DNA of 64,000 nt, taken from Vicugna vicugna (Eukaryota). This document shows positions 12,913-21,669 of this stretch, one piece after another. The notes under the pieces were generated by a model. That model did no database searches. It was not told the origin of the DNA and was given only the letters and a program-made list of their open reading frames with translations. Position numbers and translations under genes: made by a program. The stretch covers positions 124,001-188,000 of the forward strand of contig MU059537.1 in the NCBI GenBank assembly GCA_013265495.1, written 5' to 3'. Every line of letters starts with the position of its first letter. Positions within the stretch are counted from its first letter, which is position 1.

Positions 12913-12985
12913 AGCGACCTGCTGGATGTGAACCAGATCATCAAGGACTTGGCCTCCATGGTGTCAGAGCAAGGAGACGCCATCG
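12913..12985 (+). CDS. TSNARE1: TSNARE1 coding exon, N-terminal half of Qa-SNARE motif, phase 0-1 (73 nt)
   Basis: Acceptor ttgtttccacag|, donor atcg|GTGGGT. Encodes [24 protein letters not shown] plus 1 nt, including the syntaxin zero-layer Q (EQG). In frame with 1810-1968. Confidence 0.93.
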
Positions 12986-14294
12986 GTGGGTACCCACGCC
13001 ATCTGTCAGGCCACCTGCCCCTCCCCCCGGTGTGGGGCTGGGGCGGCTTCTGGGGTCTGAGTGTCTCCCCAGCCCCTCAGGAAGGCCGGGCAAGGGAGAC
13101 CCAGGCCAGAGGTTGGCCCGCCCCTTCTCCTCACTGAGGAGCGCTGGCCTGTGTGCCCCCTGCCCTGGGCCTTCCTCCTCAGCCAGGGGCTCCCCAGGGT
13201 GAGGACCAGCTGTCTGGGGGGCGTCAGACTGCAGTGGGTGCCCCAGCGGAGGGCGCTGGACGTGGCACCACCGTGGAGTGCCGATCCTGCTGCTGATTCA
13301 CCACGTCAGCCACTTCTCAGGAAACGTGGGTGGTGGGGACAGGGCTGTGCAGGACGAGCCGTTGTCCCTGCTGTTCCTTCCACGTGAGAGCCTCCGCCCC
13401 ACCAGCCCGGTGCCCACACCCTGCGGCCATATGGCTTCTCCTGAGCGCCCTGGGCGCCCGAGCAGGAACTCACCACCCTCTGGCCTAGAAGAGTGGCTCC
13501 TGGTCCCCAGAGCCACTTGCCAACAGTCAGCTCCCGGCCAGGACCCCAGGGCTCACCCACCCAGCCTCTCTACCTGTTCCCCGGCTGAGCTGTTGCCTCA
13601 CCAGGGGCCCCGCGGCTGTGAATAAGCCTCTCGCCTCTCAGCCTGGGTGCCGTGGAGCTTCTGAGGTCCAGGCATGTGCTGTTCCCTGGCGGGCAGCCCA
13701 GCCGCCCCCCTGCCCTAGGAGGGCGACTGGACAGGGTTGGGCCGTGACGCTGGCAGGCTTGTCCTCGCTCCCACGGGATCCCGCTCCTCAGCCTGGGCAG
13801 CTCCAGTGGGACCGCCCCGTCACCCCTTCACAGCACCTCTTGCAGGACCCCCACCTCCACCTCTGGCTGGCTGTCTTGGGGCGGTGTATGCAAAATGCTT
13901 TGTACACTCCAGATGGATGCCCCGGTGTCTACAGATGGTCACTCAGTCCTGCTCCTGGACGATCAGGAAGGGATCGTCTCCCGGTGGGGAGGTGGAGAGG
14001 GCTGACCTGCTGCAACCGTGTAGGGGCCCGGCGGAGGGGTGGGCACCTGGGGACCAGAGTAGCCAGGAGCCAGGACCCCACTGCCCCCTGATGTGGGTGT
14101 TTCTAGGGTGATGGACGTTGGGCTGGGGCCACTGTACCCTCTCCAGGGAGCAGTGGGGGCCTGGGACCAGGATTCTGGGGGTTCCCTGCTCTCCATGGCC
14201 CGTCCCATCTGCTGCCCACTCAGCCTCTGGTGCCTTTCCAGGGTCCAGAAGCAGCCAAGCCACATGCCAGCGGAGCTCCAGCCCCGAGCCGGCC

Positions 14295-14700
14295 ATGGCG
14301 GCCCTGCTGTCCGGGCCGGGCTGCGTGCCCCTGCGGCCGAGCTCCCACTCCCGCACCAAGACCCGGAAGCCCAACTTCAGCCCCCAGGAGACAGAGGTGC
14401 TGGTGCAGAGGGTCACGCGCCACTACCCGCTGCTGTTCGGGGCGCTGCGGGGCCCGCCCGCCCGGAAGCATCGCGTGTGGAGCCGCATCCTGCAGGCGGT
14501 GAACGCACTGGGCTACTGCCGCCGGGACCTGGGCGACGTCAAGCACAAGTGGCGGGACCTGCGCGGCGTGGTGCGCCGGAAGCTGGCCGAGCGGCCCCGG
14601 GCCCCTGGCCCTGTGCTCACGCCCGTCGAGCGCATGGTGGCCGAGACCTTCGCAGTCCCGGGCCCCCCGGGCGAGGGCCAGGCCGCAGAGCTGCTGCCAA
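14295..14700 (+). CDS. Myb/SANT-like (Myb_DNA-bind_5-type) DNA-binding domain coding exon nested in a TSNARE1 intron; the exon probably starts at 14242
   Basis: Kozak gccATGg at 14295. Encodes RKPNFSPQETEVLVQRVTRHYPLLFG...RVWSRILQAVNALGYCRRDLGDVKHKWRDLRGVVRRKL...LTPVERMV, the pattern of MYPOP/NAIF1/TSNARE1-type Myb domains. Perfect donor ccaa|GTAAGT at 14700/14701 (phase 1), acceptor gcctttccag| before 14242, CpG-rich codons. Confidence 0.85.
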
Positions 14701-20587: not shown

Positions 20588-20870
20588 GGTGGATGGGCGC
20601 GTGGCTGGATGGACAGAGGTGAATGATGGATGGGTGGATCAAGGATGGATAGACAGTGGATGAGGATGAATGGATTGAGGATGGTTGGCTGAGAGATGAA
20701 CAGATGGATGGACGGATGGATGTAAGGAAGGATGAAAGGAAGGAGGGGATGGGTAGGTTGGATGGATGCTTGGTGAACAAACGGATGGGCAGCGAGCTGA
20801 GGGGACGGATGAGCATGTGGACGTGTGTAGGTGGGCTGGTGGACAGACAGATGGCAGCATGGTGGTAGCA
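20588..20870. repeat. Degenerate (TGGA)n low-complexity repeat
   Basis: Run of ggatggat/gatgga units directly visible. Confidence 0.85.
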
Positions 20871-21088
20871 TTCCGGCTTGGGAGCCGCCAGGTTGAGTTT
20901 CAGTCTCGGCGTTACTGGAGGAAGTCTTTCGCCCTCTCTTTGGTGTCCTGGTGAGGGTGCAGCTGGCCACCACAGAGGGGCCCCTCGAGACCCCCATATC
21001 TGCACGTGCAGGACCGTCTGCGAGTGGCCCCTCCTGGCCCTCCCAGTCCTGGGCCGTGGGGCTCACGTTTCCTGTCTCCCCCTGCTAG

Positions 21089-21669
21089 CAGACGAGGAGG
21101 ACGAGGCCCCCAGCTGCCTGTGGCTGCCCCTGCGGACACTGGATGGGCCGAGCCTGCCCGAAGCCGACCCCCTGGACCTCCGAGGAGCCTACCCTGCTGC
21201 CACTTCCTCACCCTCTCCACCCGCCTCCCCAGCCTCAGCGCCCCCGGCGGCCGCATTCCCTGGGGCTTCCCGGCCCTCGCCACCCACCTCTGTAACACCC
21301 CAGCCCTTGGGGAAGCCCGCGGTGGCCGAGGCCTCAGAGTTTGAGCGGAGGCTCCTGGACTCCCAGCGGCGACAGGGTGCCGTGCTGCGCTCCTGGTCCC
21401 AGCAGCAGAGCACGCTGATGGCCCAGCAGAATGCACTGCTGCAGAGGCTGGCCGAGCAGAGCCAGAGGCTGGCCGACGGCGTCGAGGCCCTCAACCGAAC
21501 GCTGGAGAGGCTGGTGGAGGCCCGCCCGGCCCTGGGTGCCTCGCCCCCCATCCCTGACGGCCCCCTTGGGGGCGGAACAGCCTGTGGGCCGGATGGAGCC
21601 CCCCAGGGCACCCCCACGGGCCTGGAAGTCTTCTCAGGGATGATCCTGAAGGTGGAGGAGGAGGTCTAG
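21089..21669 (+). CDS. Terminal coding exon (acidic/Pro-rich linker, coiled coil/leucine zipper, C-terminal ILKVEEEV*), putative partner of the Myb exon
   Basis: Pyrimidine-rich acceptor tttcctgtctccccctgcTAG|CAG| (starts 21089 or 21092, both phase 1, matching the 14700 donor). Open for 192 codons to TAG at 21667-21669. Contains the heptad L-AEQSQR-L-ADGVEA-L-NRTLER-L. Confidence 0.75.

Follow-up and report, generated by a model that had tools for sequence, protein, structure and literature searches.

NAIF1 is built from a Myb/SANT exon followed by a coiled-coil exon, the same layout as in the unit described below, and its protein binds and imports the HARBI1 transposase-derived protein. Host-transposase fusion genes that arise via exon capture by splicing, such as SETMAR, have reportedly been described by Cosby et al. 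in Science in 2021. TSNARE1 joins a Harbinger-derived Myb-like domain and a syntaxin-like SNARE domain in one gene (bioRxiv 10.1101/2021.02.09.430442; PMC9392472). It is a high-confidence schizophrenia gene from genome-wide association studies, and the only functional study of it asks why the Myb-like domain is present (bioRxiv 10.1101/2021.02.09.430442). That work gives a 15-exon human gene model and four validated human brain isoforms, tSNARE1a-d (Plooster et al., bioRxiv 10.1101/2021.02.09.430442). Here we analyse a stretch of 64,000 nucleotides from Vicugna vicugna (assembly GCA_013265495.1, contig MU059537.1, positions 124,001 to 188,000 of the forward strand), hereafter the window, whose sequence, by its similarity to annotated proteins, is that of the 3' half of TSNARE1. 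We think it probable that an interleaved, transposon-derived unit of two exons, one for a second Myb and one for a coiled coil, is joined in frame by splicing to the first SNARE exon of this gene, from a donor at position 12985. The elements on which this reading depends are the following.

12913 to 12985, + strand: exA, 73 nt, the N-terminal half of the Qa-SNARE motif (24 residues plus 1 nt), including the zero-layer Q.
14220 to 14241, + strand: 3' splice-site tract before the Myb exon, conserved.
14242 to 14700, + strand: Myb exon (Myb2), 459 nt or 153 codons, phase 1 at both ends.
14295 to 14297, + strand: in-frame ATG (GCCATGG), lineage-specific and not a conserved start.
18128 to 18210, + strand: exB, 83 nt, the C-terminal half of the SNARE motif (DSIEAGLEAVSSHTEAASELLAGASRHQ).
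21089 to 21669, + strand: coil exon, with an acidic DEEDE start, a P/S-rich linker, a long helix and the conserved C-terminus FSGMILKVEEEV; stop TAG at 21667 to 21669.
21322 to 21519, + strand: coiled-coil core, VAEASEFERRLL...TLERLVEA, with leucines at heptad spacing as judged by eye.

The window was compared with the genomic loci of a tamarin (L002), two further mammals (L003 and L004) and the Malayan pangolin, Manis javanica (L005), and with two spliced contigs from pig (L001 and L006). All the splice sites, phases and open frames that a preliminary description of this DNA had claimed are present on the sequence. The acceptor of exA reads ...TTTCCACAG/AGC (the slash marks the border) and its donor ATCG/GTGGGT; the exon ends in phase 1, its sequence is conserved in L002 to L005, and its donor presumably lies four residues after the zero-layer Q, which we placed by analogy with syntaxin 1A. 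This phase-1 donor, at 12985, is the branch point of the isoforms. The middle segment of the human SNARE domain is 73 nt long, equal to the length of exA (bioRxiv 10.1101/2021.02.09.430442). The Myb exon lies between the acceptor ...GCCTTTCCAG/GG and the donor CCAA/GTAAGT, and it encodes an S-rich linker, a basic patch (RTKTRKPNF) and a Myb/SANT-like trihelix domain. It has the properties of a symmetric cassette exon, namely AG...GT borders, a length that is a multiple of 3, and both inclusion and skipping, the latter observed in the canonical proteins P0088 and P0095 and in the human isoforms. The acceptor of exB, ...GATTTGCAG/AT, is in phase 1, and the exon ends in phase 0 at ...SRHQ. Tandem acceptors (TAG/CAG/) precede the coil exon, which can start at 21089 or at 21092, in phase 1 either way; in the Vicugna pacos models, isoforms X1, X2 and X4 use 21089 and X3 uses 21092. 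The AG for 21089 is kept in 4/4 genomic sequences, and the AG for 21092 is found in the window only among the four aligned.

The translation of exA, the Myb exon and the coil exon is identical to Vicugna pacos TSNARE1 isoforms X1, X2 and X4 over 370/370 residues, and through the 21092 acceptor it is identical to isoform X3 over 369/369; camel proteins share 96-98% identity with it. exA and exB together translate to a syntaxin-12-like Qa-SNARE motif that contains the zero-layer Q and ends at ...SRHQ. The order exA, Myb exon, exB, coil exon is the same in 5/5 mammals (the window, tamarin, L003, L004 and Malayan pangolin).

Five in-frame combinations of these exons had been claimed: (a) the canonical SNARE, from exA to exB; (b) half of the SNARE motif followed by Myb and coil; (c) the SNARE motif split by Myb; (d) half of the SNARE motif followed by the coil; and (e) Myb followed by the C-terminal half of the SNARE motif. 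The joins translate without a stop in 5/5 cases. They are in frame because the host intron, the Myb acceptor and the Myb-coil intron are all in phase 1, and hence they do not represent five independent coincidences. The length of an open reading frame (ORF) is no proof on its own either, since long ORFs are common in DNA with a guanine plus cytosine (GC) content of 64-68%, as in the window, which holds 162 ORFs of at least 110 amino acids. The frame of the Myb exon is open already from 14112, 5' of its acceptor, and the chance of an open 17-codon stretch between the AG and the ATG is ~0.7, estimated from base composition. The status of these exons above chance comes from homology, from conservation among mammals, and from matching transcripts and gene models.

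Route (b) is the best supported of the five, with a 100% match to Vicugna pacos X1-X4, where it forms the leading RefSeq model of the gene, and it is annotated in more than 100 mammals. With part of an elephant-seal isoform as query, 324 proteins match Myb2 plus coil at E <= 1e-20, and 112 of the best 120 among them run from exA to Myb2 and then to the coil without exB. The taxa with this route comprise carnivores, equids, cetaceans, bats, ruminants, pigs, elephants, sloth, rodents and primates; for human there are several XP models, of which XP_011515216 is one. Ensembl holds models of the same route for meerkat, dog, pig and macaque. A turtle Myb plus coil protein, used as query in an exhaustive representative search, independently returned a meerkat protein of 798 amino acids and other proteins of route (b), and a model from the turtle Pelusios has the exA to Myb join.

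Route (a) is found in P0088, in P0095 and in human isoforms. The further claim, that the Myb exon can be spliced between the two SNARE exons as in route (c), is borne out by two independent spliced pig contigs, L001 and L006, and by horse, seal and lynx gene models. The contigs come from two runs (SRR24875532 and SRR16248230) and were assigned to pig because they match proteins of Sus scrofa and warthog; their spliced structure suggests an RNA origin, and they are most likely RNA-seq assemblies. They contain an upstream exon, exA, the whole Myb exon, exB and a terminal exon in this order, and one of them has an intact ORF of 432 amino acids. Several Gnomon and Ensembl models agree with them: the join is present in horse, Przewalski horse, lynx and seal, and Myb is followed by exB in P0025, P0084, P0089 and P0208. 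The outer exons of these contigs correspond to two further elements of the window.

1807 to 1968, + strand: upstream TSNARE1 coding exon for the linker and the start of the SNARE motif (...REEAVLQIE), spliced to exA from a phase-0 end.
19385 to 19994, + strand: counterpart, by homology, of the alternative terminal exon used after exB in the pig Myb-including transcripts; boundaries approximate.

The upstream exon has a 100% tblastn match to the Vicugna pacos XP isoforms and directly precedes exA in the pig contigs. Its acceptor is a tandem cagcag at 1800-1810, with a start at 1807 or 1810, and it is a second NAGNAG site in TSNARE1. As for the terminal exon, positions 1497-2060 of L006 are 66% identical to 19396-19994 of the window, and the tail of P0222 matches 19397-19483. 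The segment 19385-19994 may be the true counterpart of the human "exon 13" that lacks a transmembrane (TM) segment, for which the coil exon in phase 0 is an alternative candidate. At 19900-20010 there is a run of GAG/GAA codons (EEEEEEEQEEEEEEKEEE) within an ORF of 263 amino acids, and the elephant LOC111748934 model and P0099 include similar sequence as an exon further upstream, probably as predictor artefacts.

The next issue is whether the Myb exon is entered from exA or begins a gene of its own. The preliminary description had named two signs of an independent gene with its 5' untranslated region (UTR) in this place, the absence of a 12985>14242 junction and a disrupted frame between 14242 and 14294, and this check does not point to such a gene. 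The orthologous junction is observed in spliced contigs and models, and the 14242-14294 frame is open and free of indels in L002, L003, L004 and L001/L006, with a stop in the Malayan pangolin only. The AG at 14241 is conserved: the 22 nt before the Myb exon (TCAGCCTCTGGTGCCTTTCCAG) are almost invariant among the window, tamarin, L003, L004 and pangolin, and the sequence further upstream has diverged. The donor CCAAGTAAGTG is conserved in the aligned mammals, and the length of the exon, 459 nt in three species and 432 nt in one, is always a multiple of 3. The codon at 14295 is ATG in 2/6 aligned sequences (window and tamarin) and GTG in L003, L004, pangolin and pig. At the corresponding residue, 119 annotated proteins divide into 45 with V, 25 with M, 23 with T, 17 with A, 8 with E and 1 with L, and these sequences have no other Met before the Myb domain. 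Therefore, in most mammals the Myb domain can be translated only via an upstream coding exon. Taken together, the alignments indicate that the Myb exon is an internal coding exon and not the first exon of a nested gene, for which a conserved start codon of its own is lacking.

The alternative would be that the Myb and coil exons form a separate two-exon nested gene with its own promoter and a start at 14295, which would encode a NAIF1-like protein of 328 amino acids, the exA junctions being read-through or annotation artefacts. The ATG does stand in a good context (GCCATGG) in the window and in tamarin, M occurs at this position in horse, bat and lemur models among the 25/119, the turtle protein P0049 (325 amino acids) is annotated as a free-standing Myb plus coil, and the coil exon is treated as a separate gene in elephant LOC111748934 and in one pangolin model. 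Against this, the codon is GTG or another one in pig, L003, L004, pangolin and seals, ~80% of the annotated proteins have no Met there, and the conserved AG and pyrimidine tract are followed by a frame that is open and indel-free 5' of the ATG. Moreover, the pig contigs and more than 100 models enter the Myb exon from exA, and the mammalian matches of the coil-exon search include no full-length Myb plus coil protein of <=336 amino acids. There is no CpG island upstream (CpG observed/expected of 0.37-0.47 at 13-14.3 kb), even if non-CpG promoters are possible. In our opinion a nested gene is thus improbable. The name MSANTD7 was considered for it and dropped, as the papers that mention MSANTD7 concern other contexts.

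The two remaining routes bear on a wider claim, that this locus is a splice switchboard. In its full form, all of (a) to (e) would be made and used, with a tissue-specific choice (for instance brain versus testis) among trafficking, nuclear and decoy proteins. The in-frame joins and the routes (a), (b) and (c) stand, and for (d) one model can be added to the database and transcript support of the other three. However, the sole basis of route (d) is a 2013 ab initio model from Camelus ferus, EPY87044, which contains an implausible exon, and for route (e), which would require the lineage-specific ATG at 14295, our searches gave no support. The in-frame fit of the five combinations follows automatically from three phase-1 sites and is hence not evidence of design. 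A regulated five-way choice goes beyond these data, and we think that it is very unlikely.

The strongest argument for route (b) comes from the ratios of nonsynonymous to synonymous substitution rates (dN/dS), which reveal purifying selection on Myb2 as well as on the coil exon in its phase-1 frame. The ratio is 0.17-0.34 for the Myb2 domain and 0.21-0.40 for the coil core, and over the coil exon it is 0.2-0.5 in phase 1 (0.27-0.38 over the same nucleotides) as against 0.9-1.7 in phase 0. Phase 1 of the coil exon can be reached from 14700 or from 12985 only, as exB ends in phase 0. Because the phase-1 frame is constrained and phase 0 is not, route (b), and less likely route (d), would be the reading that selection has preserved. 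The phase-0 reading of the coil exon after exB (21089-21298) gives a P/R-rich tail of 68 amino acids (QTRRTRPPAACG...), used in the models P0021 and P0088; the position of its stop varies widely between species, and it has no constraint of its own.

The coil exon is ~70% conserved in many mammals, with an invariant C-terminus (FSGMILKVEEE), and it can still be recognised in turtle and in the frog Ascaphus; the columns of the coil core are nearly invariant from turtle to mammals. Every indel in this exon among the window, tamarin and L003 has a length divisible by 3. Both exons are damaged in Manis javanica: the Myb exon (L005 9857-10354) by a TAG in frame and the loss of 1 nt, the coil exon (L005 16831-17374) by a 23-nt deletion that merges two frames. 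This joint damage fits a single functional unit. In the giant pangolin model P0007 the coil frame is intact. The fixed syntenic position together with purifying selection (dN/dS 0.17-0.5) indicates that the Myb unit is not a mobile copy. The least probable of the alternatives, that the Myb and coil exons are decaying Harbinger remains chained together by predictors and that the pig contigs reflect low-level aberrant splicing, could draw on the many long ORFs of GC-rich DNA, on odd predictor models at this locus (P0340, P0097 and P0337), on the published human brain isoforms without the Myb exon and on the broken pangolin copy, but it is contradicted by the selection that acts on Myb2 and on the coil in phase 1, by the conservation of the coil and its FSGMILKVEEE end from frog and turtle to mammals, by indels that are multiples of 3 only and by conserved splice sites.

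Several domain and structure predictions help in describing what these routes would produce. In Pfam, Myb2 belongs to PF13873 (Myb_DNA-bind_5), with E 9.2e-20 over profile positions 1-77 of 78, and Vicugna pacos X1 has two Myb_DNA-bind_5 stretches and Syntaxin_2 but no match to the SNARE domain. The Pfam SNARE family (PF05739) is not reported in P0263 and P0222, proteins of routes (b) and (c), and it is reported for the canonical TM-bearing P0095. Neither route keeps a contiguous SNARE motif of ~53 residues: in (b) the SNARE part ends at GDAI, after 29/53 residues in human coordinates, and in (c) 153 residues are inserted. An AlphaFold model built with 18 sequences is poor overall (mean predicted local distance difference test score, pLDDT, of 52), and its sole confident element is the coil core, predicted as one helix of 66 residues (residues 256-321) with pLDDT >90. 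Comparison of the coil with other Myb-like proteins by phmmer, in a small local set, gave weak matches, which we have not used as evidence.

The Myb2 segment (14343-14690) has ~63% protein identity to the N-terminal Myb of P0263 (residues 66-190), and TSNARE1 therefore contains two paralogous Myb exons. Isoform X1 of the frog Ascaphus combines a full SNARE motif with a Myb and a coil behind it, and lacks an N-terminal Myb. There are hints that the 3' unit of Myb and coil is older than the N-terminal Myb.

A TM exon was not found in the window in a search with the tail of a relative, and it may lie beyond the window or within a run of 214 N at 32220-32433, which is an assembly gap or masked sequence. 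At 57948-58050 there is a strong acceptor (ttttgcag) followed by an open frame of 26 codons, a stop and then AATAAATAAA; this segment resembles a terminal or 3' UTR exon and encodes no TM segment.

In the mechanism that we propose, a Harbinger-derived Myb-like unit on the same strand, formed by one trihelix exon and one coiled-coil exon, would be interleaved with the two SNARE-motif exons, and its Myb exon would act as an internal coding exon entered from donor 12985. Splicing from 12985 to 18128 would complete the SNARE motif and yield a trafficking protein. Splicing from 12985 to 14242 and then from 14700 to 21089 or 21092, with exB skipped, would give instead a long protein without a membrane anchor. 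Such a protein would contain the N-terminal Myb, the Habc domain, 29/53 residues of the SNARE motif, Myb2 and the coiled coil, so that full-length forms would have two Myb domains. With the joins 12985>14242 and 14700>18128, 153 residues would be placed inside the SNARE motif; the simplest view of this product is that Myb has been included and exB has not been skipped. The long isoform may be an abundant and stable protein. A nuclear or DNA-binding role for it is plausible, and it is likewise plausible that the half or split SNARE motif of routes (b) and (c) makes a non-fusogenic decoy.

A number of observations weigh against the splicing of the unit as we propose it. The pig contigs follow route (c) and not (b), and one of them has a 4-nt deletion in a GCCC repeat, where the other is intact; we treat this deletion as an assembly or allele artefact. 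The 14700>21089 junction would be drawn from gene models (Gnomon, Ensembl) and from the selection argument, and the dN/dS values themselves were obtained on short segments from 3-4 species. Constraint is weak in the 17-codon linker before the ATG (dN/dS 0.3-0.8) and absent in the 22 codons after it. No canonical poly(A) signal is present within 4 kb 3' of the coil stop, and the long transcript might be a target of nonsense-mediated decay. Finally, none of the four validated human brain isoforms contains the Myb2 exon (bioRxiv 10.1101/2021.02.09.430442). The first AATAAA/ATTAAA 3' of the coil stop lies 4 kb away, at 25800-26400, in an AT-rich stretch with a GC fraction of 0.45. Even so, we consider the in-frame splicing of the Myb and coil unit onto the first SNARE exon to be the probable reading of this locus.

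A more specific proposal can be put forward tentatively, and we rate it as somewhat less than an even chance. The selected 3' product might be a NAIF1-like protein of Myb and leucine zipper that is translated only when fused to the Habc domain and half of the SNARE motif, so that the choice made at one donor would yield either an endosomal SNARE or a factor with two Myb domains that is probably nuclear. This isoform class would then have been overlooked in published work, and the phase-0 coil tail would be an unconstrained by-product.

If the proposed splicing is true, exon choice at donor 12985 may trade SNARE function for DNA-binding function, and the locus would be a clean example of a transposon accessory protein that is captured by exon splicing in the middle of a host motif. 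Purifying selection has kept both the second Myb exon and the coil exon in placental mammals, and in most species their translation requires splicing onto exA. What is left of interest is a conserved, unstudied isoform class of a psychiatric risk gene. It would matter here whether the long isoform occurs in brain, whether it is nuclear and whether it pairs with HARBI1-like partners. Within the papers that could be searched, none deals with the internal Myb exon, the long isoform, the frame argument or long-read TSNARE1 isoforms.

The isoform sequences as such are already known to annotation in RefSeq and Ensembl, including that of Vicugna pacos. The long TSNARE1 isoforms in these databases are route (b) itself, as in Vicugna pacos X1-X4, Mirounga angustirostris XP_045751734, human XP_011515216 and meerkat A0A673VPV9. 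They are computed models, however, without a curated or published description, and the phase, the loss of the start and the selected coil frame are not addressed in them.

Among the described systems that come closest, the human isoforms tSNARE1a-d stem from the same gene, have the 73-nt SNARE exon, include a Myb-like domain alternatively, and end in C-termini with or without a TM segment. The difference is that their Myb is the upstream one (exons 3-4, ~63% identical to Myb2) and that the SNARE motif is intact in 4/4; in the 15-exon human model the two SNARE exons follow each other directly. The NAIF1/MSANTD family (PMC9392472) shares with the unit of the window a Myb/SANT-like trihelix of PF13873 type, a C-terminal helical region, a fixed position and purifying selection. 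Those genes are free-standing, whereas Myb2 plus coil has no conserved start of its own and would be made as the C-terminal portion of a protein that resembles syntaxins. Fusions of the SETMAR type resemble this locus in that a transposon DNA-binding domain gains an acceptor and is spliced in frame to host exons, giving a chimera beside the original protein. In the window, by contrast, the captured part would be a Harbinger accessory Myb-like protein and not a transposase, its capture would fall in the middle of a motif so that inclusion destroys the host domain, and the captured exons straddle a host exon.

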